The notes beneath the pieces are model-generated. The model did no database searches and was not told where the DNA came from. It worked only from the letters and a program-made list of their open reading frames with translations. 64,000 nucleotides of DNA, from positions 372,001 to 436,000 of the forward strand of contig JAPDFW010000136.1 of NCBI GenBank assembly GCA_028826165.1, in the 5' to 3' direction. Of this stretch, positions 21,097 to 43,328 are shown in pieces. The stretch comes from Anaeramoeba ignava BMAN. Lineage: Eukaryota > Protista > Anaeramoebae. A program made the position numbers and the translations under genes. Positions within the stretch are counted from its first letter, which is position 1; every line of letters starts with the position of its first letter.

Positions 21097-24000
21097 ATGT
21101 CTAAAATTGATGAAATAATAAAAGCAGAATTTGAACAAATTCAAAAAAGAAGAAGAGAAGAAGAATTAAAAATCAAAATCAAAATCAAAATCAAAATCAA
21201 CTTCAAAATCTAAAAATGATAAAAATGATAAAAATGATAAAAAAGAATTTAATTTTGAAAACAAACAAACAAAAACAACAACAAGACGAACAAATACAAA
21301 CCCAAAAAAACAAAATAATTCAAAAAAAAATCAAAATAAAAGTCAAAATAGAAATGATTCTGAAAATAAAAATATTCAAAATAACCATAATTCCAATCAA
21401 AGTAAGAATAAATTTTATTTTATTCAATTTTATTTTATTAAATTTATTTTATTAAATTTATTTTATTAAATTTATTTTATTAAATTTTATTTTATTCAAA
21501 TTTATTTTATTAAAATTTATTTTATTCAATTTTATTTTATTAAATTTATTTTATTAAATTTATTTTATTAAATTTATTTTATTAAATTTATTTTATTAAA
21601 TTTATTTTATTAAAATTTATTTTATTAAATTTATTAAATTTATTTTATTAAATTATTTTTAATTTTTATTTTAATTTTTTATTTTTAAATTTTATTTTAT
21701 TAAATTTTTAAATTTATTTATTATATTAAATTTATTTTATTAAATTTATTTTATTTAAATTTATTTTATTAAATTTTTTATTAAATTTTTATTATTTAAA
21801 TTTATTTTATTTTTATTTATTTTATTAAATTTATTTTATTTAAATTTATTTTATTAAATTTATTTTATTTAATTTTTAAATTTATTTTATTAAATTTATT
21901 TTATTTAATTTTTATTAAATTTATTTTATTAAATTTATTTTATTAAATTTATTTTATTAAATTTATTTTATTAATTTTATTTTATTAAATTTATTTTATT
22001 TAATTTTATTTTATTAAATTTATTTTATTAATTTTATTTTATTCATTTTTATTTTATTAATTTTATTTTATTAAATTTAATTTATTAAATTTGTTTAAAA
22101 GATATCCCTGATCCAATTATTAACAAAAAACCAACAAGAGTTAAAAGTTTTGTTAAATTGAAAAAAAATCATTCTTTTGTTCCAACAAATCCATCAGAAA
22201 AAATTCGAGAAAAATTAATTGAATTAGGAATTCTTGATCCAGATTCAAAACAAGAACTAACATCAAATTTTCTTTCTGAAAAATTATCGCTTGAAAATAG
22301 ATCAGAATCTATAAAGGAACAAAACCCAAAAAAAGAAATAGTTCTTTATGATGATTATTATGGAACTCCTACTGATATTAAATCTGTTAAAGATATTGTT
22401 TTTCAATTTGAAAAAACAAAAAGCAATCCAAATATTGAATTTTCTCCTCCAATTCAAAAAAGTCAACCTATAAATAACAAAAAAATAGCAAAGCAAAGTT
22501 CACTTCAAGATTCAAAAATTTATCAAAATCAAAATCAAAATCAAAACCAAAATCAAAATAATATAAAATCACCACAAATAAAACCAGAAATTCTATTAAA
22601 ACTTCAAAATAAACTCGAAGAAGACCAAATTTCAGAAAATGATGATTCTCAAATTCTTGATAATTTCCAAAAAATTCTTGCTGAATATATTACTGATGAA
22701 AATGAAAATCAACAAATTAAAGAACAAAATGATCTAAATGATGAAAAATCAAAAAATAACAAAAAAGAAAACAAAGATTCAATTTTGGATGAATTTACAA
22801 AAGGAATTGAAGAACATTTAAAAGATGATAATAAAAAACATAAAAATCAAAATCAAAGAAAAATAACAAAAAAGAAAATAAAGATTCAATTTTGGATGAA
22901 TTTACAAAAGGAATTGAAGAACATTTAAAAGATGATAATAAAAAACATAAAAATTCTAAATCAAGGAATAATGATAAAAAAGAAAATAAAGATTCAATTT
23001 TGGATGAATTTACAAAAGGAATTGAAGAACATTTAAAAGATGATAATAAAAAACATAAAAATCAAAAATCAAAGAAAAATAATGATAAAAAAGAAAATAA
23101 AGATTCAATTTTGGATGAATTTACAAAAGGAATTGAAGAACATTTAAAAGATGATAATAAAAAACATAAAAATTCAAAATCAAGGAAAAATAACAAAAAA
23201 GAAAATAAAGACTCAATTTTGGATGAATTTACAAAAGGAATTGAAGAAAATTTAAAAGATGATAATAAAAAACATAAAAATTCAAAATCAAGGAAAAATA
23301 ACAAAAAAGAAAATAAAGATTCAATTTTGGATGAATTCACAAAAGGAATTGAAGAAAATTTAAAAGATGATAATAAAAAACATAAAAATCAAAAACCAAA
23401 GAAAAATAATGATAAAAAAGAAAATAAAACAGATATTCCTAATCAAGAAACTAAAAATAAAATAGAAAATCAAGTTAAAGAAAAGGATGAAGATATAAAA
23501 CTAGAAGATATGTTAGAAAAGGAAAAAAAAGAAATTGAACTCAGACTAAAATCAATTTTGGGAAAAGATTATTCTCCAAAATCCAATAATCAGATTTCAA
23601 TTCCCAAAAAAATGGAAATGAAAAAAGAAGAACCTAAAGAGACTGAATCAAAAAAAGAAGAAGATAAAGAGATTGAACTAAAAAAAGAAGAACCAAAACC
23701 GAAAAAATTAGTTACTCAAGCAACTGCATTAATTAATTATACTGCAAAAAGAGATGTTGAATTGTCTTTCAAAAAAGGAGATATTATTACTGTTCTTGAG
23801 AAATCGTCAACTGGATGGTGGCAAGGAATAACAAAAAATGGAGAAATTGGTATTTTTCTTTCTGTATTTGCTTCTGTTAAAGAAATGTTAATAGATGATG
23901 ATGGTTCAGATTCTTTTGAAAATAAAAAAAATAATATAAATGATGAACAAATAAAAACGAAAGAAAATCAAGATCAAAATCCAAATAAAGAAAATTCAGA

Positions 24001-27000
24001 TGATGAAGATATTTATGAAATTGAAGAAATTAAAGAAAATCCAAATAAAGAAAATCCAGATGATGAAGATGATGAAGATATTTATGAAATTGAAGAAATT
24101 AAAGAAAATCCAAATAAAGAAAATTCAGATGATGAAGATGATGAAGATATTTACGAAATTGAAGAAATTAAAGAAAATCCAAATAAAGAAAATTCAGATA
24201 ATGAAGATGATGAAGATATTTATGAAATTGAAGAAATTAAAGAAAATCCAAATAAACAAAATTCAGACGATGAAGATGATGAAGATATTTATGAAATTGA
24301 AGAAATTAAAGAAGATCCAAATAAACAAAATTCAGATAATGAAGATGATGAAGATATTTATGAAATTGAAGAAATTAAAGAAAATCCAAATAAACAAAAT
24401 TCAGATGATGAAGATAATGAAGATGATGAAATTGAAGAAATTAAAGAAAATCCAAATAAACAAAATTCAGATAATGAAGATGATGAAGATATTTATGAAA
24501 TTGAAGAAATTAAAGAAAATCCAAATAAACAAAATTCAGATAATGAAGATGATGAAATTGAAGAAATTAAAGAAGATCCAAATAAACAAAATTCAGATAA
24601 TGAAGATGATGAAGATATTTACGAAATTAAAGAAATTAAAGAAAATCCAAATAAACAAAATTCAGATGATGAAGATGATGAAGATGTTTATGAAATTGAA
24701 GAAATTAAAGAAGATCCAAATAAAGAAAATCCAAATAAACAAAATTCAGATGATGAAGATGATGAAATTGAAGAAATTAAAGAAAATCCAAATAAACAAA
24801 ATTCAGATGATGAAGATGATGAAGATATTTATGAAATTGAAGAAATTAAAGAAAATCCAGATAATGAAGATGATGAAGATATTTATGAAATTGAAGAAAT
24901 TAAAGAAAATCCAAATAAACAAAATTCAGATGATGAAGATGATGAAGATATTTATGAAATTGAAGAAATTAAAGATGATAAACAAAATATAGATAATGAA
25001 GATGATGAAAGCGAAGATGAAAGCGAAGATGAATATGATGAGCATCAAAATGATATTAAAGCAATTGTTATTGAAAATTATAAAGGAGTTAATGATTCTG
25101 AAATTTCTTTAACAAAGGGAGATATTGTTTATATTTATGGAGATCTTGGACAAGGATGGGCTCAAGGAGAAACTAAAGATGGAATCATAGGAAAATTTCC
25201 TTTAAAATATGTAGAATATATTGACAAAACACAAGATATCACAAATAAAGAACTAAATGATCAAATCACAAAGGAAACAACATATAACACCACAAGCAAA
25301 AAATCCAAACACAAAAAAGAACGCCAAAAAATAACGGAAACTTATGAAAATTATGAAGATTACGATCCAGATTTGGATCATGAAAACGATCCAAAAGTTC
25401 GAGCTTTATCAGACTATACTCCACAAAGAGATAATGAATTATCATATAAACAAGGCGATATTCTTTATGTCACTGGCCAAAGTGAAGTTGGTTGGTGGCA
25501 AGGAGAAACAAGAGATGGTCTTATTGGTATTTTTCATTCTCAAAATTTTGAAGTTGTAGATGAGGCTTCAAGAATCAATTTAAATAAATTCCAGGAAATT
25601 TCTGGTTTTGAAATTATTCCTGTTGAAATTCCAGATCAGGTTTCAACTCCTGATCATTTATCGAATCCAGATCAATCTCAAGAATCAAATCAAACACAAG
25701 ATCCAATATTATTTACATCAACGTATATGAATAATATTTAATTATAATATTTAATTATAATATTTAATTATAATATTTAATTATAATATTTAATTATAAT
25801 ATTTAATTATAATATTTAATTATAATATTTAATTATTACATTTATTTATAATATTTATTTATAATATTTATTTATAACATTTAATTATAATATTTATTTA
25901 TAATATTTAATTATTATATTTATTTATTATATTTATTTTTAACATTTGATAATAATATTTAATTATAACATTTACTTATTATATTTAATTATAATATTTA
26001 TTTATAATATTTAATTTTAATATTTATTTATTATATTTAATTATAATATTTAATTATAATATTTAATTATAATATTTATTTTATATTTATTTATTTTATA
26101 ATATTTATTTATAATATTTAATTATAATATTTTAATTTTAATATTTATTATATTTAATTATAATATTTAATTATAATATTTAATTATAATATTTAATTAT
26201 AATATTTAATTATTATAATATTTAATTATAATATTTATTTTATTTACATTTTATTTATTTAATTATTTATTTATAATATTTATTTATAATATTTATTTTA
26301 TAATATTTAATTTTAATATTTAATTTATTATATTTATTATGTTTTATTATATTTATTTATATATTTTTATTATAATATTTAATTTATAATATTTAATTTA
26401 TAATATTTAATTATAATATTTATTTTTATAATTTAATTATAATATTTATTTTTATTTATTTATAATATTTAATTATAATATTTATTTTTAATATTTATTT
26501 ATTATATTTATTTATAATATTTATTTATAACATTTATTTATTACATTTATTTATAATATTTAATTATAACATTTATTTATTATATTTAATTATAATATTT
26601 ATTTATAATATTTAATTATAATATTTAATTATAACATTTATTTATTATATTTAATTATAATATTTATTTATTATATTTAATTATAATATTTAATTTTAAT
26701 ATTTAATTTTAATATTTAATTATAATATTTAATTATTAGTTCAATTTATTCATATCAACCTCAATCAGAAACTGACTTAGATTTTGGGATTGGAGAAGAA
26801 ATTCAAATAATGGCACAAGATGATTCTGGTTGGTGGTATGGAAAAAATAAAAATCAAAAAAAAGGAATGTTTCCGTAAGTCAAATTTAAAATTAAAATTA
26901 AAATTAAAAATTAAAATTAAAATTAAAATCAAAATCAAAATTAAAATTAAAATTAAAACTAAAATTAATATTAATATTAAAATTAAAATTAAAATTAAAA

Positions 27001-27713: not shown

Positions 27714-30700
27714 ATGAATCGAAATTTAATTACTTTTCCTTTTTCTTTAAATTTAAGAAAACAACTAATTTCAAATGGTTTATATTTTGAATCTGATTTA
27801 AGTCAACTTTCTGAAAATCAAAATCAAAATCAAAATGAAAATCAAAATGAAAATATAAATCAAAATCAAAATGAAAATCAAAATATAAATGAAAATCAAA
27901 ATCAAAATCAAAATCAAAATCAAAATCAAAATCAAAATCAAAATCAAAATCAAAATCAAAATCAAAATATAAATCAAAATCAAAATCAAAATCAAAATCA
28001 AAATCAAAATGAAAATCGAAATCAAATTCAAAATATAAATCAAAATGAAAATCAAAATCAAATTCAAAATCAAAATCAAAATCAAAATCAAAATCAAAAT
28101 ATAAATCAAAATAAAAATCAAAATCAAAATCAAAATCAAAATCAAAAATCAAAATGAAAATCAAAATCAAAATCAAAATCAAAAAATCAAAATGAAAATC
28201 AAAATCAAAATCAAAATATAAATCAAAATATAAATCAAAATCAAAATGAAAATGAAAATCAAAATATAAATCAAATTCAATATCAATATCAAAATATAAA
28301 TCAAATTATAAATCAAATCATAAATCTAGATCAAAATCAAAATCAAAATATAAAATCAAAATGAGAATTTAAACAAATTACTACCATTTTCAAAAGAAAA
28401 AATTGAAAAAATTCAAGAAATTGAAAATACGATAAAAAGTTTTGTCAAAGGATCAACAGGACAAGAAGAACTAAATCAAGAACAAAATCAACAACAATTT
28501 ACAACATTATCACCTTCATTTGATTCTCTTCTTCGAGGAGGGATTTATACAGGAAAATTATTAGAAATTTGTATGTGAATGAAAAAAGAAAAAAACAATT
28601 TTTAAAAGAAGAAATTTTAAATATTTTTTTAAATTGTGTTTTTTTTTTTGGATTTAAAGGTGGATTATCTGGAACAGGAAAATCTCTTCCAATTGATTCA
28701 TTTGTTGTAACAAAGAATGGTTTTTATCCAAACGGCAAGTTATTTCCTGGAATGTTTGTGTGTAATTCAAAAGGTGGAGTTTCAAAAATATTAGCAATTT
28801 TTCCTCAAGAAAAAAAACTTCCTGTTTATAAAATTATTTTTAGCAACGGAGATTCTGTTGAGAGTTCTTTGGACCATTTGTGGGTCGTTAATAATGAATT
28901 GGAAAATAAAAAACAACTTGTTAATACGCAGTATCTTTATCAAAAAGTGATGGATGAACGCAATTTATATTCATTTTCAATATCAACACCCAAAATTGTG
29001 TTTTTTTCTGAAAAAAAATTACCAATTCATCCTTATTTATTTGGCTCTTTTATTGCGTATTTGGATTGCTCTTTTCAATACCTAAATTTTCAACAAAATA
29101 ACTCGCTTGTTTCTATTCGTTTTTTATTGAAATTGTTGGGAAAATATAGTTGGAGAAAAAAAGAACATTTGGAATTGATTCAAAAATTGATTGCAAATCA
29201 AAAGCAGAATTTGAACCAAAAAATTAAATGCTCAATTCCAAAATCAACAATATTTAATTCAAAGAAAAACAGATTCAGTTTTATTCAAGGATTGTTTGAT
29301 TTTTATTATGAAAAAAATTATATCAAAATCGATGACAAAACAAATCATTTGGTTCATTTTATAAACAAGAAAAAAATTGGAGAAAAACTTAAAATCATTT
29401 TGGAATCTTTTGGAGGGATTTCCACAATTAAAAAAAATTATTCTGAAGGAGAAATCAATCAATGGATTTGTGAAATTCAACACAAAAAAATTTGGAAGTT
29501 GTTCAAAATTTATCGCGATGAAATGAAAGAAAAAACAAGGAAAAAAATAAGAACAATTCGTCGAAAAATTTCGCAAATTGTTTTTTCAAGAAAAGTTGAA
29601 TGCTTATGTGTATTGCTTGATTCACCAGATCATCTTTATTTAACAAATCATTTTGTAGTAACACATAATACCCAATTAGCAATGCAACTCTCATTAAGCG
29701 TTCAATTACCACTTTCTTATCATGGACTGAATGCAAAATGTGTTTATATTGATACAGGAGCTGGTTTTTCAATCAGTAGAATGGCTGAAATTGCTGATGG
29801 AATTTCAAATCGATTAACTCAAAATTTTTATTTGAATAATTTTTCACAAATTGATTTACAACAAGTTTCCAATTTGAAACGTGATTTTATTCATAATATT
29901 TATTATTATTCACTTCATAACCATTTTGCTCAACTTGCTATTTTGAATATTCTTCCAGATTTATTAAAAAAGGATCCACAAATCAAGCTTATAATTTTTG
30001 ATAATATATCTTTTTTTTTCAAAAAATCAGTTACAGGATGGGAAGAATCAACACAGATAATTGGGTATTTTGGAGAATTCTTATTAACATTAGCAGCTGA
30101 ATATCAAATTAGTGTATAATTTATTAATAAAATTGAATTTTATAATTTATTAATAATAATTGAATAATAATTTAATAATAATTGAATAATAATTGAATAA
30201 TAATTTGAATAATAATTGAATAATAATTTTATAATTGAATAATAATTGAATAATAATTAAATTAATTGAATAATAATTTAATAATAATTAAATAATAATA
30301 ATTGAATAATAATAATTGAATAATAATTGAATTTTATAATTGAATAATAATTGAATAATAATTTATTAATAATTAAATAATAATTGAATAATAATTAAAT
30401 AATAATTGAATAATAATTGAATAATAATTGAATAATAATTGAATAATAATTGAATAATAATTGAATAATAATTGAATAATAATTGAATAATAATTTAATA
30501 ATAATTGAATAATAATTTAATAATAATTGAATAATAATTTAATAATAATTGAATAATAATTTAATAATAATTGAATAATAATTGAATAATAATTTATTTA
30601 TAATTAATAGATTGTTATTATAATTTAAAATTTAATAATAATTTAATAGAAATTGAAAAATTTAATAGATTGTTGTTTTTGTCATCTTTAGGAAATTGAA

Positions 30701-30962
30701 AATGTTTTTCCATCTTTAGGTAAAATATTATTTCTTATTTATTATTTATTATTTATTATTTATTATTTATTATTTATTATTTATTATTTCTTATTTCTTA
30801 GGTGAATTATGGCAACATTATCCAAATCAACAATTAATTCTTTTTCAAAAATTAATTGAAAAAAATCAAAAAGAACTTAAAAGACAAGCAATTCTTACAA
30901 AAAGTTCATTTCTTCCAAAAAAATTAATTGAATTTGAAATTAAAAAAGAAGGAATTTTTTAA
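27714..30962 (+). CDS. RAD51C: RAD51 paralog C, interrupted by an intein at Walker A; multi-exon with an N-terminal QN tract
   Basis: N-terminus MNRNLITFPFSLNLRKQLISNG resembles RAD51C. Core after removing intron 28571..28659 and the intein: FTTLSPSFDSLLRGGIYTGKLLEICGLSGTGK|TQLAMQLSLSVQLPLSYHGLNAKCVYIDT. Walker B is LIIFDNI. C-terminus PSLGELWQH...RQAILTKSSF...FEIKKEGIF, with TAA at 30960-30962. Confidence 0.88.
28683..29669 (+). mobile_element. Intein (329 aa) with degenerate LAGLIDADG homing endonuclease; class 3 WCT signature
   Basis: In-frame insert between GTGK and TQ. Block A SLPIDSFVVT; block B SSLDHLW; block F ECLCVLLDSPDHLYLT; block G VVTHN followed by extein +1 Thr. Endonuclease remnants are PYLFGSFIAYLD, FIQGLFDFYY and LKIILESFGG. 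Confidence 0.95.
30150..30600. repeat. Intronic 12-bp satellite (aataataattga-type) in RAD51C
   Basis: Tandem units follow the GT donor near 30114. Confidence 0.85.
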
Positions 30963-32373: not shown

Positions 32374-32579
32374 TATTATTTTAATTTTAAAAAAAACAAA
32401 TTATTTTGAAAAAAAAAGAAAATTGAAAAAATGAAAATTAAAAAAATAAAAAAATTTTTTTATTTAAATGGGCAAAAGTAGAAAAAAAATTAAAAAATAA
32501 AAAAATATTTTTTTTTTCTCCTTTTTAATAAATTTTTTTTTTTTCATTTTTTTTCTTTTTAAAATAAAAAAATTTAAAT

Positions 32580-35500
32580 ATGGAATTAATTATTTTATCA
32601 AATAAATTATTATATCAAACACTTCAAAATCAAGATAAAAGAATTAAATCAGATAAAATGCTCGAAATTTTAATAAAAAATAAAAATAAATTTGAAAAAT
32701 TTCTTTTACTTTTTGATAAAAAAACAGAAAATCAAAATACAATCAAAATAAATGAACCAATTAAATTTTGTGGAAAGGAAATCATTGTTGATGAAAATCA
32801 AAAGCAATTTATACAAGAAATAAGCAAGAAATTAGATATCAATGAATTTACTAGTTTTGGAATGTTCCATTTATTTCTCAATATAAATCAACCAAATTTA
32901 ACGAACAAAATTGAATATAATGAAAAAACACTGAATCAAATATTCCATTTTTATTTAAAAGAGCGATTGTATTTGCTCAAGGTGTTTTATATATTGCTCA
33001 AAATTGCGCAAGATCGAAATCATCTTTATAATATTTCTGCGGTTGAAATTTTAAGAAAAACACCAACTCCAAAATCAACTATTCAGACTTTATTGTCTCA
33101 AATTGAATCAAATATCAAGAAAATTGCCGGTTTCCAACATACTCAAGTAAATTCTAAAGAGGACACAAGAAAATGGATTGACGAGTATGTTTTGGAGCAG
33201 GAAGTTTTGATGGAAATCATTTTCGCAATTATATATGCTCGAGCAGAAAATATTGATTCGGAATCAATTGTTATAATTTACCACAAATTCGCGCAATATT
33301 CCTTCTCTCAAACATTGCAATATTCTTTAGTTTCTGAAAAACGCAAAAGTAGCATTATAAGAACAGGTTTTCTTGCAATTCTGATTCTGATTGGAATTCT
33401 AAATTTGGACGAGTTTTTAAAGCGCATATTGAAATACGAAAATGAGGACAAAGAGGAAGAAATCAATTTGGAAAAACGCATCAAAATTCCCGATTTTTTC
33501 CCAGAGGTCTTTTTCCAAGAACAGAGCCAGAAGATAATCTGCCAAATATTGGATTCCTATCACGATTCTCCATACAATGGCCCTGTCATTTTGACTTGGT
33601 CAGTACTTTTTTGTAAAGCTACTGAGTTCGATCATAAATATGATCCTCTCTGTCAAAAATATGCTTTGAAAGCTTCGCAAATGGATTTTTTGGCATTTCT
33701 TCTGAAAATAATTCTCAGCGATGAAATCAATCAAGACAACTCAAATTTATTGTATTACAAAACCATTTTGAATTCCTTACTTGGACTTCTTGTTAATTTT
33801 ATCGATCTTCCCAATTGTCCCTTTAATGACCAAATTGTGGATCTTGCTTGCCAAATATATCACGGGCATCCTCAATTATGCAATAATTTTTGGGAATTTT
33901 TTGGCTCGAATTCTGAGTTCATTCCTTTGGTTGTTCATCTTGTTGATAATTTTCCACAGAACATTCTTGTATTCAACAAATTCATGGCCTCTTTGTGTTC
34001 AACATGCGAGTCATCATCTCGAGTGATTGATTTTCTTTCGCAAATGCGCAATTTCCAACAACCCATTTCTTTTGATGATTACGATGATAATTTCAATGAA
34101 TTTTTGCAAATATATCCTGATGGAAATAATCAACGTGTGGAGGTTCTTCAATCGTTTCATCTCCAAGGAATAAAAATTCCAAAAGGAACAAATGGACGTA
34201 TTCTTTCTGACAGTGAGATATCCAAAAACAGAGAGGATGAAATAATTTATCCTGATCAATTAGGGTTTTGGGTGATTGAATGGGATATCCCAGTGATTGA
34301 GCTTTTTTCAGGAATGATACAAGATTTATTGATGGAAACAAATTTTCAGCATTCAAATATTTCTGGGGAATTAGAACAAATCACATCAGTTTTTGAACTT
34401 ATTTATAATATCATTTCGTGCGGAGAACACAAAGAAAACCAACTTGAAAAAAGAATTGAAACTGAAGGGAATCATTTAAGCAATTTAAATAATTCAAGGG
34501 ATTTGAATAATAATAATAACAATAATAACAATAATAATAACAATAATAATAACAATAATAATAATATTGATATTGATATTGATATTGATAATGATATTGA
34601 TATATCATCTCGAAAAAAAAATATTGTTATAAAACTCCTAAAAAAAATGTGGCCATTCATCTCTAAATTTCAAAATGATGATTCTCTTGATCCCTCTTCT
34701 TCTTTGCTTCAAATTGCAATGCCTCAGTTTTTCCAAATTTTCCAGAAAGTTGCAACGCATAATATTTCATCCCCAATTTTATATCGTCTGCTTTCTTTCA
34801 GTCTTAAATGCATCTACGAATTCGCACTTTATAGACCCTCAGATGTTTGGGTTCTTATGAGTCAATTTGAATTTCTGCCTCAAAACACATCTATTAACAA
34901 CATGGAATCAAACACATTGCAATTTGTCCACGAGCAATATCCGGATATTTTGAAGAATTTACTGATGTATGTCGAGTGTGCACAGGGAAAATATTCACTT
35001 ACAATCTCGTTTCTCAGAATTTTCCATTTGTGCTTAAAAGACTATTTATCATGGGTTGTTTATCCTGATAGAAAAGAACTTTCAACATCGAACTTAAAAC
35101 AGACAAAAATACCTTATACAGTTGTGGAAATGCAGGGCATTTTGACTTATATTTGCAACAATATTTTTTCAATGTTTCGGACATGGAAATATGCCAAATT
35201 GAAGCACAGATGGCTCATTGGCATTTATATTCTTGATATTTTCAAGGAAATTTTGGATCACTTTTCATTTTCAACAAACGAATCAAAAAGAAGCAAATGG
35301 AGTTACGATACAGAATGGAATTATAACAAATCAGATGAAATGAGCACAGAATCGGAGTTGAACGAAAACTCAATCATGGCGCTGAGAAAATATTTGATGA
35401 ACCATTTTGTTTATAACACCCAAATGCACTCGGAACTTTTCCAGCTTGTTTCTTTAGGGCCATCTACAATCAAGAAAATATTCACAAATAAGAAAATCAC

Positions 35501-38500
35501 GGAAGGAAAATTTGTAGAAAAATTGGTGCAAAATTCACTGGATTTGTTCGATGATATTTTGCTGTATTGCAGAGAGGAATTCGAGGTTATAACCCCAATG
35601 GAAAATGCAATATTCGAAGATTCGACTCTTTCAAATGATGGCAAATCAACATTGATTCAAACATTGGTTCATTATATCGGGTATCCTTATTGTGATTCCA
35701 TCCCGCTATCTGCAATACGAATACTGGCTCATCTTTCTGAAATTTCATCCAAAGAACCGAGCCAATCAACAGCATTTATTTCCAATTTGTGGAGCGAGGC
35801 ACATTCACTCCGTAATTTCCTTCTTTACAAATTATTCAGCGACAGAGAGTTCCCACAAGTCAAAACGGAAATCATTAATTTGATCAAAATATCTTTGGAT
35901 TCAAATACAGGCATTGCTGTTATTTTTCTCACTTCGCTGGATTTTTTCGACCAGAACGAAATTCAAGAACCTCTTTTAAATGAAGAAAAAAGCGAGAAAA
36001 TAACAAGCAAACAGAAAATATTATCGCCAAATAGCGAATTGAACAGAGAGGAATCAAGATCAAAATTGATTGATTTTATTATTGAATTTGTTTCCAAACC
36101 AGAAAACTTCAAAGAATTCCCGAGATTGTTTTCAGTGATTGTGGAATTGATAATCTCAATTTGGGAACAAGGAAAAGACTATTTTGCAGCCATTTCGCAG
36201 ATGAACAATTTATCCAAATTTTGGGATAGTATTTTTTTCATTTTGGAAAAATCGGAAACATCAAAAGATGAAGAGAATGGATATTATTATGAAAGTTTCC
36301 AGAAGCAAATCCGAGGCGCAGTTTTCAGATTGATATCAAGAAATTTAATGATTTTAAATCCTGAATTTCAACACGAATCCTTCAGTGCCCATTTCAAAAG
36401 ATTTTTGCAGCAAAACACATCCAAACAGAACGCGGATTTGATTTTTAATTTCAAGCAAATTTTGAAGCATGCTTCCCAAATGAACCAAGAAATGGAGCCT
36501 CCAGAGGTCCAAATTGAAGAAGGACTTGATCTATCTTCATTTTTAAATCAGCCCACAAAACGTATTTATGGCAAAAATTTTTTGTTCAATATCGGGTTGG
36601 TCAAGAAAACTCTTGCGAAATATTTTAATAGCGAAAAACTCGAGCATCAAATCAAACAGCTTGAAATACTCAATTCCTTCTGGTCGCGTGTTGATAGCGA
36701 GTTTTTATTGTTCCGTTCATTTGCACAGTTTGTCAAGGTTGTTTTGGATAAAAATCCAGAAGTTTTAGTGGAAATTTGGCAATCTGATGAATTATTTCAA
36801 ATTTGGCAATCGAAATTAAGCAATATTTTGGAATCGAATAAATTGCTGAATTTTTTGAAATCGAACGAACTTACACGAATTTGCGGATCGAATGAGCTTT
36901 TGAAAATCTGCAAAACAGATCAAATTCTGCAAACACAAGAATTTAATGAACTTATAAAAGTTTGCGAACCAGAGAATTTATTGAAAATATTCAAATCAGA
37001 CGAATTTTCGAAAATTTGCAAATTGAAGGAATTATTGAGCATTTACGAATCATTTTTCACAGTGAACACGGATAAATCACTTAAAACGAGTGTTTCAAAA
37101 CAAACAATCATGAAAATCCACGACAAAAGCGATATTGGAGTTTTTCTACTGAAAAAAACACCTCGACTCCAAACATCAAGCGTTCTTTTGCCGTCAATAA
37201 CAAAAACAATGGGGATTTTGATCCCGTCAATGCATCTATCACCAAAACTAGCCGATGATGCTCTTTTCAATCTTTTAATCGCAGAAATCATTCTCATCAA
37301 TAACGAGATTGAGCATACAGAACAATTTTACGAAGCCTGTTTTGAAACACTTGAAATTGTTTGTGGAATCATTTCTTCAGGTTTCGAATACATCCAAAGA
37401 AGAAACTATTGTTTGTCAATCGTTGTTTTTGAGCAGTTAATCAAAAAATTGATTATCCAAAACCAGAATCAAAAAACCGATCCAAATCAAAATTCAAATT
37501 ACAAAAAAATTCTAATTCAGCAAAAAAGTTTGGAGTTTATTCACATGAAAAGAATAATCCCAAAAATATTCGAGTTATTAACGCAATTCATCAAATCATT
37601 GACAACAGAAAACGCTGAATTCAACGATAGTATCCAATACACAAACGAAACAATCAATTTGATTTCGAATATGAATTCATCATTTGAAAAAGAGAATTTA
37701 AAAGAAAATTTAAAAGAAAATTTAAAAGAAAATTTAAAAGAAGATGAAAAAAACATTTATCATGAAACACGTTCTGAAATGATTGAGAAAACATTCTCAT
37801 TCACAGAAGCACTATTGAATGTGCTTCTTATTTTGGCGATGGATCCAAGCTCTGCAGAAATGCTGAGCGAGAACGGAATAATCATTCTATTTACTTCTCA
37901 ATCAATTGATTTATTTTCATCATTTATTGTTTTGCCAACTTATTTAAATACACCAAACCCGACCATCTTTATTCGTTCCAAATGGAGCCGTTTTTGGAAC
38001 AAAATCTTGCTCATTGTATCAGCAATGATTGGATCGCTTAATCACAACATGAATTTTCTGAAGCAAGTGATCCAATTTGTTTCTGTTCATTATCAACGGA
38101 TTTCAAACGCTTTTTCTTTTCGCGGGACTTATATCGCAAGAAATCACGCACTTTCGATCCCGCTCACAATACACCAGGCGCAGGAAGAGGAGATGCACAA
38201 AATCATGCATCAGCAAGGCGCCAATTATCTCCATGAATTGACGCTTGGCTGGCTTGAAGAAATGGAATCATCAACTTTATTTCTTTCTGTTTTTTCCGAA
38301 CTTGGTTTGTCCGAATTTAAGAATACAGACGGCACCAACTTCGCTAATTTCGTTGAGCTTTCTTCCCGCCTCATCGCACACACAGAGTATTTATTATCGT
38401 CTTTGAATTACGAGAACATCTCAAAGCCAGTGTCTTCAATTGAAACCCAAATGGATCTTTCCGAGTTTTGCGGTTTGGTTGAAGAAAAAATCCTGATCAT

Positions 38501-38996
38501 TTTAAAAAATGTTATCACGTTTCTAAGAAAAACAATTCCTCAAATGAATTCAAGGAAATTCTTGTTATTCGAACCCTTTCTAGCACCTGTCAGATCGGTT
38601 ATAAATACCGAAAATCAATCTTCAATGGGAATGCTTATTTTGACCCAAAATTATTGTCTTAGTTCTTTACAAGGAAAAAATGTCAGTTTTTCAAATAGTA
38701 AATCACAAATCCAATATAATTCTCTCAAGCAAGACTGTCTCCAATATGTTTATGAAAATTCTCTTTATGTTTTGATTTCGCATTTTGTTATTTATCACTT
38801 GAAATATCCAAATCAAATTAGCAATGAATTAAAAAATGAAATGGAAAATGTTGTTTTTAAATTTTATGAATATTGTAAATCAATTAATAACACTTTGATT
38901 GGAAAACAAAAAGTTCAATTTGCTCAGAATTTATGTGATATTGTTTTGGAATGTATTGGAGCAAGATTTGATTCAGATCGTGGATTATTATTTTAA
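32580..38996 (+). CDS. NUP188: Large intronless alpha-solenoid protein, probable nucleoporin Nup188 family
   Basis: 2138-aa ORF. The N-terminal ISKKLDINEF...FYLKERLYLLKVF pattern, GPVILTW, ECAQGKYSLTISFL and TWKY....RW..G segments resemble Nup188. The family call is from recall, not a search. Confidence 0.65.
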   Translation: MELIILSNKLLYQTLQNQDKRIKSDKMLEILIKNKNKFEKFLLLFDKKTENQNTIKINEPIKFCGKEIIVDENQKQFIQEISKKLDINEFTSFGMFHLFLNINQPNLTNKIEYNEKTLNQIFHFYLKERLYLLKVFYILLKIAQDRNHLYNISAVEILRKTPTPKSTIQTLLSQIESNIKKIAGFQHTQVNSKEDTRKWIDEYVLEQEVLMEIIFAIIYARAENIDSESIVIIYHKFAQYSFSQTLQYSLVSEKRKSSIIRTGFLAILILIGILNLDEFLKRILKYENEDKEEEINLEKRIKIPDFFPEVFFQEQSQKIICQILDSYHDSPYNGPVILTWSVLFCKATEFDHKYDPLCQKYALKASQMDFLAFLLKIILSDEINQDNSNLLYYKTILNSLLGLLVNFIDLPNCPFNDQIVDLACQIYHGHPQLCNNFWEFFGSNSEFIPLVVHLVDNFPQNILVFNKFMASLCSTCESSSRVIDFLSQMRNFQQPISFDDYDDNFNEFLQIYPDGNNQRVEVLQSFHLQGIKIPKGTNGRILSDSEISKNREDEIIYPDQLGFWVIEWDIPVIELFSGMIQDLLMETNFQHSNISGELEQITSVFELIYNIISCGEHKENQLEKRIETEGNHLSNLNNSRDLNNNNNNNNNNNNNNNNNNNNIDIDIDIDNDIDISSRKKNIVIKLLKKMWPFISKFQNDDSLDPSSSLLQIAMPQFFQIFQKVATHNISSPILYRLLSFSLKCIYEFALYRPSDVWVLMSQFEFLPQNTSINNMESNTLQFVHEQYPDILKNLLMYVECAQGKYSLTISFLRIFHLCLKDYLSWVVYPDRKELSTSNLKQTKIPYTVVEMQGILTYICNNIFSMFRTWKYAKLKHRWLIGIYILDIFKEILDHFSFSTNESKRSKWSYDTEWNYNKSDEMSTESELNENSIMALRKYLMNHFVYNTQMHSELFQLVSLGPSTIKKIFTNKKITEGKFVEKLVQNSLDLFDDILLYCREEFEVITPMENAIFEDSTLSNDGKSTLIQTLVHYIGYPYCDSIPLSAIRILAHLSEISSKEPSQSTAFISNLWSEAHSLRNFLLYKLFSDREFPQVKTEIINLIKISLDSNTGIAVIFLTSLDFFDQNEIQEPLLNEEKSEKITSKQKILSPNSELNREESRSKLIDFIIEFVSKPENFKEFPRLFSVIVELIISIWEQGKDYFAAISQMNNLSKFWDSIFFILEKSETSKDEENGYYYESFQKQIRGAVFRLISRNLMILNPEFQHESFSAHFKRFLQQNTSKQNADLIFNFKQILKHASQMNQEMEPPEVQIEEGLDLSSFLNQPTKRIYGKNFLFNIGLVKKTLAKYFNSEKLEHQIKQLEILNSFWSRVDSEFLLFRSFAQFVKVVLDKNPEVLVEIWQSDELFQIWQSKLSNILESNKLLNFLKSNELTRICGSNELLKICKTDQILQTQEFNELIKVCEPENLLKIFKSDEFSKICKLKELLSIYESFFTVNTDKSLKTSVSKQTIMKIHDKSDIGVFLLKKTPRLQTSSVLLPSITKTMGILIPSMHLSPKLADDALFNLLIAEIILINNEIEHTEQFYEACFETLEIVCGIISSGFEYIQRRNYCLSIVVFEQLIKKLIIQNQNQKTDPNQNSNYKKILIQQKSLEFIHMKRIIPKIFELLTQFIKSLTTENAEFNDSIQYTNETINLISNMNSSFEKENLKENLKENLKENLKEDEKNIYHETRSEMIEKTFSFTEALLNVLLILAMDPSSAEMLSENGIIILFTSQSIDLFSSFIVLPTYLNTPNPTIFIRSKWSRFWNKILLIVSAMIGSLNHNMNFLKQVIQFVSVHYQRISNAFSFRGTYIARNHALSIPLTIHQAQEEEMHKIMHQQGANYLHELTLGWLEEMESSTLFLSVFSELGLSEFKNTDGTNFANFVELSSRLIAHTEYLLSSLNYENISKPVSSIETQMDLSEFCGLVEEKILIILKNVITFLRKTIPQMNSRKFLLFEPFLAPVRSVINTENQSSMGMLILTQNYCLSSLQGKNVSFSNSKSQIQYNSLKQDCLQYVYENSLYVLISHFVIYHLKYPNQISNELKNEMENVVFKFYEYCKSINNTLIGKQKVQFAQNLCDIVLECIGARFDSDRGLLF

Positions 38997-39868: not shown

Positions 39869-42800
39869 ATGACCAGTTTACTTCGAAATTTAGTTAAATT
39901 ACAAAAAGTTGGTGAAGGAACTTATGGAGTTGTTTATAAAGGTAAGTTAAATAAATAAATAAATAAATTAATATCAAAAAAAAAATAATTTAATTTTTTA
40001 ATTTTTTTAATTTAAATTTTAATTCAAAAAAAAAATAGCTCGAAATACACAAACAAATGAAATAGTTGCGCTTAAAAAAATTCGATTAGAAATGGATGAT
40101 GAAGGTATTCCTTCAACTGCAATTCGAGAAATTTCTATTTTGAGACAATTGAAACATGAAAATATTGTGAATCTTTTGGATGTTGTTTGTACTCGTGATA
40201 AACTTTATTTGATTTTTGAGTTTGTTGATCATGATTTGAAAGCACATATGGATTCTGTTGGAAAATTAGATCCTTTAGTTATAAAAGTAACGAATCAAAT
40301 CAAAAAATTAATATATAAATTAATATTCAAATCAAAAATTAATATATAAATTAATATTCAAATCAAAAAATTAATATTTAAATTAATATTTAAATTAATA
40401 TTTAAATTAATATTTAAATTAATATATAAATTAATATTTAAATTAATATTCAAATTAATATATAAATCAATATATAAATTAATATATAAATTAATATTTA
40501 AATCAATATATAAATTAATATTTAAATTAATATTTAAATAAATATTTAAATTAATATTTTAATTAATATTTAAATTAATATTTAAATCAAATATTTAAAT
40601 TATTATATAAATCGATATTTAAATCAATATATAAATTATTATTTAAATTAATATTTAAATTAATATTTTTAATAAATATATAAATTAATATATAAATTAA
40701 TATATAAATCAATATTTAAATCAATATTTAAATCAATATTTAAATCAATATTTAAATTAATATTTTAATAAATATATAAATCGAATATTTAAATTAATAT
40801 ATAAATCAATATATAAATCAAATATTTAAATAAATATATAAATCAAATAATCAAATATTTAAATCAAATATTTTAATAAATATATAAATCAATATTTAAA
40901 TTAATATTCAAATCAAAAATTAATATATAAATTAATATTTAAATTAATATTTAAATCAATATTCAAATTAATATATAAAATTAATATTTAAATTAATATT
41001 TAAATCAATATTTAAATTAATATATAAATTAATATTTAAATCAATATATAAATCAATATATAAATTAATATATAAATCATTATTTAAATTAATATATATA
41101 AATTAATATATAAATTAATATTTAAATTAATATTTAAATCAATATTCAAATCAATATTTAAATCAATATTTAAATCAATATTTAAATCAAATATATAAAT
41201 CAAATATTCAAATTAATATATAAAATAATATTCAAATCAATATTTAAATCAATATTTAAATTAATATATAAATCAATATTTAAATCAATATTTAAATTAA
41301 TATAAATCAATATTTAAATCAATATTTAAATTAATATTTAAATTAATATTTAAATCAAATATTTAAATTAATATATAAATTAATATATAAATTAATATTT
41401 AAATTAATATATAAATTAATATATAAATTAATATATAAATTAATATTCAAATTAATATATAAATCGATATATAAATTAATATATAAATCGATATATAAAT
41501 CAATATATAAATCAATATATAAATTAATATATAAATCAATATATAAATAAATATTTAAATTAATATTCAAAATTAATATATAAAATAATATTCAAATCAA
41601 TATTTTTAATAAATATTTAAATTAATATTTAAATTAATATTTAAATAAATATTTAAATAAATATATAAATTAATATTTAAATAAATATATAAATTAATAT
41701 TTAAATAAATATTTAAATAAATATTTAAATTAATATATAAATTAATATATAAATTAATATATAAATTAATATATAAATTAATATATAAAATCAATATATA
41801 AATCAATATATAAATCAATATATAAATTAATATATAAATTAATATATAAATTAATATATAAATTAATATATAAAATAATATATAAATATATTTAAATTAA
41901 TATTTAAATTAATATTTTAAATCAAATAATCAAATATATAAATTAATATTTAAATCAATATATAAATCAAATATTTAAATTAATAAATATATAAATCAAA
42001 TATTTAAATCAATATTTAAATCAATATATAAATTAATATATAAATCAATATTTAAATCAATATTTAAATTAATACAAATTAATATTTTAAATCAAATATT
42101 TAAATTAATATATAAATTAATATATAAATTAATATTTAAATTAATATATAAATTAATATATAAATTAATATATAAATTAATATTCAAATTAATATTTAAA
42201 ATCAATATATAAATTAATATATAAATTAATATATAAATCAATATTTAATAAATATATAAATCAAAAATTAATATATAAATTAATATATAAATTAATATTT
42301 AAATCAAATATTTAAATTAATATATAAATTAAATATATAAATTAATATATAAATTAATATTTAAATTAATATTCAAATTAATATTCAAATTAATATTTAA
42401 ATTAATATTCAAATTAATATTTAAATTAATATATAAATTAATATATAAATTAATATTTAAATTAATATTTAAATTAATATATAAATATTTAAATCAAATA
42501 TTTAAATCAAATATTTAAATTAATATATAAATTAATATTCAAATCAATATAAATTAATATATAAATCAATATTTAAATCAATATTTAAATTAATATATAA
42601 ATATATAAATCAAATATTTGTAATTAATATTTAAATCAAATATTTAAATTAATATTTAAATTAATATATAAATTAATATATTAAATAAATATTTAAATTA
42701 ATATTAAATAAATATTTAAATTAAATAGAGTTATATGCATCAACTCCTTGAAGGATTATTATTCTGTCATTCAAGAGCAATTATTCACCGAGACTTAAAA

Positions 42801-43328
42801 CCCCAAAACCTTTTAATAAACTCATCAGGAGTTTTAAAACTTGCAGATTTTGGACTCGCCCGTTCATTCTCAATTCCGTTAAGAACATACACTCACGAAA
42901 TATTAACACTATGGTATCGAGCACCAGAAATATTACTTGGTTCAAAGCACTATTCATTGCCAGTAGACGTTTGGAGTGCAGGAGTGATTTTAGCGGAAAT
43001 GATGATGAATTATCCACTTTTTCCTGGTGATTCTGAAGTGGATCAAATTTACAAAATTTTTCAAGCTTTTGGAACTCCAAATGAATCTAATTGGCCTGGC
43101 GTTTCTTCTCTTCCAGATTATTCTCCAGTCTTCCCTTCTTTCACTCCAAAAACTCTTAGAAAAATCATTAAGGAAAGACTTAAAGATGATCCTATTGATG
43201 AAGTTGGTTTGGATCTTGTTGAAAAAATGTTGGTTTATGATCCTAAAAAAAGAATTTCTATTAAACAAGCTTTGCAACATCCTTATTTTGATGATTTAAA
43301 AAATTTGAATGAACCAAAACAAAAATAA
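39869..43328 (+). CDS. CDK1: Cyclin-dependent kinase, PSTAIRE class (CDK1/CDK2/cdc2), 3 exons
   Basis: [65 protein letters not shown]. Introns at about 39942-40037 and 40287..42728. Confidence 0.95.
40290..42725. repeat. 2.4-kb intronic 12-bp satellite (aaattaatattt/aaattaatatat)
   Basis: About 200 degenerate tandem units fill CDK intron 2. Confidence 0.9.

Follow-up and report, generated by a model that had tools for sequence, protein, structure and literature searches.

The window analysed here, a 64,000-nucleotide stretch of the Anaeramoeba ignava BMAN genome, has a GC content of ~20%, the value reported for this strain, and contains a gene of the Rad51 family interrupted by an intein, the only one found by a scan of the whole window. 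The gene lies on the forward strand, between a repeat-rich protein with SH3-like domains (22844-25738, by eye) on one side and, on the other, a 2138-aa protein whose family was not recognised by eye (32568-38993) and a CDK-like kinase exon (42729-43325, by eye). Its gene model was searched one exon at a time. A probable first coding stretch (27714..27815) opens the reading frame with an ATG at 27714; a database search with it gave no match, and we take its translation to resemble the RAD51C N-terminus. It is followed by an Asn/Gln-type simple repeat (27816..28362), ~550 nt of AATCAA-type repeat within the N-terminal region of the gene, in which three-frame translation reveals frame breaks near 28144, 28181 and ~28350. 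An intron spanning this repeat, from the GT at 27802 to the AG at 28396, would preserve phase. The N-extein exon (28363..28570) matches the RecA/Rad51 family weakly (NCBIfam DMC1/RadA/RAD51, E 7e-5 to 5e-4) and precedes a putative 89-nt GT-AG intron (28571..28659), placed there because its splice sites restore reading into Walker A. The 23 nt that separate the end of this intron from the intein encode the Walker A motif through Gly-Lys, which forms the N-terminal splice junction (28660..28682). Downstream of the intein, the C-extein exon (29670..30116) begins with the Walker A Thr (Thr+1) and encodes the ATPase core with Walker B (Pfam Rad51, E 2e-10). Probable last exons at 30692-30719 and 30802-30962 were delimited by splice sites read by eye, and database searches gave no support for the stretch 30692-30962.

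The host gene is best identified as RAD51C. With the C-extein as query, the top matches among solved structures are those of RAD51C (8GJ8/8GJA, E 1e-20), and human RAD51C (E 4e-13) scores ahead of RadA (1e-12 and weaker) and of RAD51, making RAD51C the best match among the RecA-family paralogs. The C-extein has a single match in the genome (42.8 Mb, 147 contigs), the other Rad51-family loci sit elsewhere, and no second RAD51C copy was found in this assembly. The 5' repeat (27816-28362) may be an intron or a genuinely damaged stretch, or it may encode an expanded Asn/Gln tract in which the assembly has slipped. Its frame breaks would fit a RAD51C pseudogene in which the intein no longer splices, but they are confined to homopolymer runs of the simple repeat, whereas the frame from 28524 to 30116 (531 codons) stays open from the Walker A motif through the insertion to the Rad51-family ATPase core. 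All splicing residues are retained although the nuclease domain has decayed, and this is the only copy of the gene that we found. We therefore regard loss of function as very unlikely.

The intein (28683..29669, + strand) is an in-frame insertion of 329 aa that divides Walker A as GK|T, and its sequence, alignments and AlphaFold model agree on a HINT splicing domain into which a LAGLIDADG-type domain is inserted centrally. Blocks A, B, F and G, the His-Asn end and Thr+1 (29670-29672) are all present. Residue 1 (block A1) is Ser, encoded by TCT at 28683..28685 and invariant in the eight distinct inteins of this kind in the genome. Block B (28866..28883) holds Ser62 (B7), His65 (B10, 28875-28877) and Trp67 (B12, 28881-28883), the same numbering as in MP-Be DnaB, the class 3 prototype (Ser62/His65/Trp67), and DnaBi1 (His65/Trp67). 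Block F4 is occupied by Cys309 (TGT, 29607..29609), the predicted first nucleophile, and block G (29661..29669) by Thr327 (G5, 29661-29663), His328 and Asn329. A preliminary description of this DNA had pointed to the Trp, Cys and Thr codons and to Ser1 as the signature of a class 3 (W-C-T, or WCT) intein, and all of these residues were recovered, the three codons at the positions it gave; its span of 28875-29672, in contrast, opens at His65, and the intein begins 192 nt earlier.

The assignment hinges on the register of block F, where the motif ECLCV offers two cysteines. Alignment with phmmer pairs Cys309 with the VRCV cysteine of the class 3 intein DnaBi1 (6BS8, Cys118), and a profile of 53 relatives pairs it with the engineered D107C of gp41-1 (6RIZ), a position that is Asp in the wild type (6QAZ); the F4 position of Cys309 is thus one of sequence and profile alignment, as distinct from residue-level structural pairing. 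On both counts the Cys falls where the preliminary description had placed it. We considered Cys307 as the F4 residue and rejected it, since the alignments select Cys309 and Cys307 varies among the 53 relatives. H65, C309, T327 and N329 are invariant across the same set, and an intein of this composition would show W, C and T at three given positions by chance with a probability of ~7e-6.

The RAD51C intein thereby has the residues that define class 3: Trp B12 (Trp67), Cys F4 (Cys309) and Thr G5 (Thr327), together with Thr+1. This triplet, His B10 and Thr+1 all fall in register with 6BS8, 6RIX and 6RIZ. The original criterion of 2010 was the absence of an N-terminal nucleophile, and by that wording a Ser at residue 1 falls outside the class. 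The later wording is that the N-terminal nucleophile is "not required", so that Ser1 does not exclude membership; Perler's group knew of three WCT inteins with Ser1 or Cys1 and flagged them as needing tests of their own. The motif by itself is no proof of the splicing route, because WCT grafted onto a class 1 intein does not yield class 3 splicing.

The AlphaFold model (pLDDT 89) shows a HINT domain carrying a LAGLIDADG-type insert. A fold search with it retrieved PI-SceI (Z 22) and the class 3 DnaBi1 structure 6BS8 (Z 19.5, rmsd 1.6 Å over 124 residues). DnaBi1 has the lowest rmsd among HINT-only structures, but the fold does not discriminate between intein classes because the class 1 inteins Prp8 and gp41-1 reach nearly equal Z-scores. 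Models of Pfam and NCBIfam barely detect this intein. Compared with the class 3 inteins MP-Be DnaB, Msm DnaBi1 (6BS8) and Mch DnaB1 (6RIX), from which the model differs by an rmsd of 1.6-2.0 Å, it shares Trp B12, Cys F4, Thr G5, His B10 and a Thr/Ser at +1. It differs from them at the first residue, which is Pro or Ala in these inteins and Ser here, and from DnaBi1 also in having a decayed nuclease domain (absent in DnaBi1) and Ser at B7 (Asp in DnaBi1).

Searches beyond this genome led mainly to viruses. With tblastn we retrieved 376 phage records, in helicases and terminases, at 28% identity at best, and alignment-based scans revealed 345 related stretches in viral contigs and two in bacterial genomes; locus scans with a single sequence returned nothing. 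A word search with the intein plus its flanks gave 17 relatives. The same search with the bare intein, in a length window that leaves out precursors, gave no match, nor did one with the C-extein at a cut-off of 1e-8. Of the relatives that we extracted, nearly all interrupt P-loop proteins, at GK|T or GK|S. Cys F4 and Thr G5 occur in 48 out of 48 viral and prokaryotic relatives and Trp B12 in 47, counts that are partly dependent on the search because some relatives were found through a block B/G pattern, F4 itself not having been selected on. Residue 1 in the same set is Ala (26), Glu (15), Ser (3) or, once each, Cys, Leu, Asp and Gln. This residue thus varies freely, and most of these relatives are incapable of class 1 initiation, their residue 1 being Ala or Glu.

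Archaeal RadA inteins are the other obvious source, given that they occupy the same GK|T site of Walker A in a homologous recombinase. We extracted 48 distinct ones from this site; all have Cys1 and Tyr/Phe-Asp in block F, with Asp at F4, and none has the WCT signature. A grouping of the RAD51C intein with RadA inteins was not rejected by an AU test (p 0.19, on 122 columns and with a very long branch), which together with the common site is what speaks for a class 1 intein that archaeal RadA passed on by descent or by homing. Against this, the RAD51C intein scores 210 bits on the viral class 3 profile versus -0.9 bits on that of the 48 RadA inteins, with which it has no detectable profile similarity, and its splicing part is 30-44% identical to nearly all viral class 3 sequences versus 10-18% to RadA inteins. 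The RadA profile score effectively refutes an archaeal class 1 origin, and we give it next to no credence. In the trees, the RAD51C intein is nested within WCT inteins from viral contigs and separated from RadA inteins and from the class 1 inteins of its own genome; the proven class 3 inteins were compared by alignment and fold and are absent from the tree, which also left out ten near-duplicate or long viral sequences and the mini-inteins. The sequence comparisons therefore support an ancestry among viral class 3 inteins, with no kinship to class 1 RadA inteins.

The closest relatives of all are found within the genome itself. It has eleven intact loci with eight distinct sequences, the siblings being 29-38% identical to the RAD51C intein, and all eight are inserted at GK|T and have Ser1, Ser B7, His B10, Trp B12, Cys F2, Cys F4 and Thr G5. 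Their hosts are RAD51C, dynein AAA1, dynein AAA3, two kinesins, ASCC3 and two probable DEAH helicases, the last two named from their motifs, as Pfam had no match on the pieces tried. Three further copies, at C113:182675-183611, C68:374472-375423 and C103:385-1282, are frameshifted and duplicate the dynein AAA1 intein and two helicase inteins; they may be pseudogenes or assembly errors. A gene of the SNF2 family (contig C71, ~846336-847460, - strand) carries another WCT intein, with Ala1, which may stem from a second class 3 acquisition.

The full-length tree unites the eight Ser1 inteins, at 99/99 support, in a single clade embedded in the viral sequences; the SNF2 intein branches outside it. 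The tree restricted to splicing columns supports the same group at 80/86 with two outside sequences included, and an AU test did not reject a topology in which the SNF2 intein joins the Ser1 clade (p 0.08). AT-rich and uneven composition and long branches could help to draw the sequences of this genome together, for which the position of the SNF2 intein, from the same genome, is a partial control. An independent transfer straight into RAD51C, with a phage helicase or ATPase as the donor, might be read from the long end branch of the RAD51C intein and from BLASTP, where some viral inteins (133 bits) equal its weaker siblings (129-150 bits). Yet the three best BLASTP matches are siblings, the clade has high support, and its members share a Ser-Leu start, Asn17, Ser62, Asp64 and Cys307, leaving such a transfer with only a slight chance of being right. 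On the phylogenetic evidence, the family was most likely acquired once, from a phage-type source, and later copied from one P-loop gene to another, with the RAD51C copy coming from inside the genome. The lateral transfer is placed at the base of the family because the RAD51C intein has its nearest kin in its seven siblings, which sit in unrelated P-loop proteins of this genome. The phylogeny thus bears out the origin that had been proposed for this intein, in a phage, virus or bacterium as opposed to archaeal RadA, but not as a transfer from phage into this gene.

The endonuclease domain of the RAD51C intein (approximately 28974..29552) has decayed: the remnants of its two motifs (~29031-29066 and 29271-29312) have lost the endings Gly-Asp-Gly and Asp-Thr-Asp-Gly, respectively. 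It has no Pfam LAGLIDADG match, whereas 41 of the 53 family members do. In active homing endonucleases of this type, both motifs close with catalytic acidic residues, and from its sequence the domain would be inactive. All nine class 3 inteins of this genome lost Gly-Asp-Gly of motif 1 and Asp-Gly of motif 2, and most viral relatives retain both motifs. Hence, the spread within the genome lay in the past. Only the splicing residues have stayed fixed, as they would if the host proteins depended on removal of the intein. The family history may then have begun when an intein with a live LAGLIDADG nuclease entered an Anaeramoeba ancestor from a phage or its bacterial host; copies of it would have settled at the GK|T sites of P-loop genes unrelated to one another and would then have lost nuclease activity, with the splicing residues kept under selection.

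Several other features of inteins in this genome came to light. A GT-AG intron of the SNF2 gene directly follows the Walker Lys codon and is directly followed by codon 1 of the intein. By simple count, an apparent intron ends 0-35 nt before the intein in 4 of the 9 class 3 alleles, within the would-be nuclease target: the intron at 28571-28659 of the window, that at the SNF2 junction, and those of two siblings (at ~1495 and ~1460 of their loci). Introns at such sites are described in PMC10710043 chiefly for paralogs that have no intein. Inteins with Cys1 at GK sites and Gly at F4 (contigs C46 and C75) belong to a different family that likewise targets P-loops. The Prp8 gene has a 351-aa intein at AKWK|TAEE, a site whose occupation is reported as new in Anaeramoeba ignava BMAN (PMC10710043), and a search of the genome for the RtcB junction pattern gave no match.

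Class 3 inteins in nuclear genes of Anaeramoeba have been known since 2023. In the main text of Gallot-Lavallee et al. 2023, PNAS (PMC10710043), the Anaeramoeba inteins called cluster 1 are said to appear class 3, with atypical N-terminal residues common to phages; they lie in P-loops of unrelated proteins, branch together and spread between unrelated genes. The inteins described here are alike in the class 3 signature, the P-loop site, the phage link and the single clade over unrelated hosts, and dynein, kinesin and ASCC3 are also named there as hosts. We infer from signature, site and clade, independently of that paper's supplementary listing, that the RAD51C intein belongs to cluster 1. The main text of the paper mentions neither RAD51C, nor the codon pattern of Ser1 and Ser(B7), nor nuclease decay for this cluster, and a literature search combining intein and RAD51C gave nothing relevant among the matches listed. 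The mycobacteriophage Catera Gp206 intein, which sits in a phage gene, is listed as class 3 (PMC3196547), and we liken it to the RAD51C intein by description rather than by sequence.

By analogy with characterised class 3 inteins, the RAD51C intein is likely to splice through a branched intermediate. Cys309 would attack the Lys-Ser1 peptide bond, aided by His65, Thr327 and Trp67, giving a block F branched thioester; the N-extein would be transferred to Thr+1, Asn329 would cyclise, and an O-to-N shift would rebuild GK-T and thereby an ATPase-competent RAD51C. Our overall reading, to which we assign a probability of about 0.8, is that of an intein of class 3 lineage in the Walker A motif of Anaeramoeba RAD51C, a member of the published cluster 1, with class 3 chemistry and spread within the genome.

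The constancy of Ser1 raises a different prospect for the chemistry, that of an intein of class 3 ancestry in which Ser1 has been reactivated. An N-to-O shift at Ser1, aided by Ser62, would then start splicing or offer an alternative start, with Cys309 as relay or helper and passage, e.g., to Thr+1. Ser1 is a usable nucleophile, WCT inteins with such a residue are those singled out by Perler's group, and Ser1 and Ser62 are invariant in eight inteins only 29-38% alike, even though each is encoded by both TCN and AGY codons; Ser242, unlike these two, is always TCN in the eight copies. The codon sets of Ser1 and Ser(B7) switch mostly in step across the family (28683-28685 and 28866-28868, plus the seven siblings). 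Position 1 changed 10 times among 34 viral sequences, and ~3 changes would be expected in the clade, where none is seen (P ~0.05, in a test devised after the data had been seen). However, about 10 other positions share this clade-only invariance, F4 lacks the Asp that is the usual class 1 helper, and Ser at B7 is shared by proven class 3 inteins, one of which, MP-Be DnaB, can do without it. Phage Catera Gp206 has a Ser1 WCT intein that reportedly did not need Ser1 in the work of Tori and Perler in 2011. Reactivation of Ser1 is accordingly improbable, and we read the conservation of Ser1 and Ser(B7) across both codon sets as a hint that Ser1 may not be dispensable, a lead and not a result. No test of class 3 splicing in a eukaryotic host was found in the literature searched, and for this reason the intein of RAD51C, a single-copy one, would suit such a test well.

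The RAD51C intein confirms the published result that class 3 inteins reached the eukaryotic nucleus and spread among unrelated P-loop genes. If Ser1 proved necessary, the first step of splicing would be seen to be capable of reverting from one intein class to another, with consequences for the definition of these classes.
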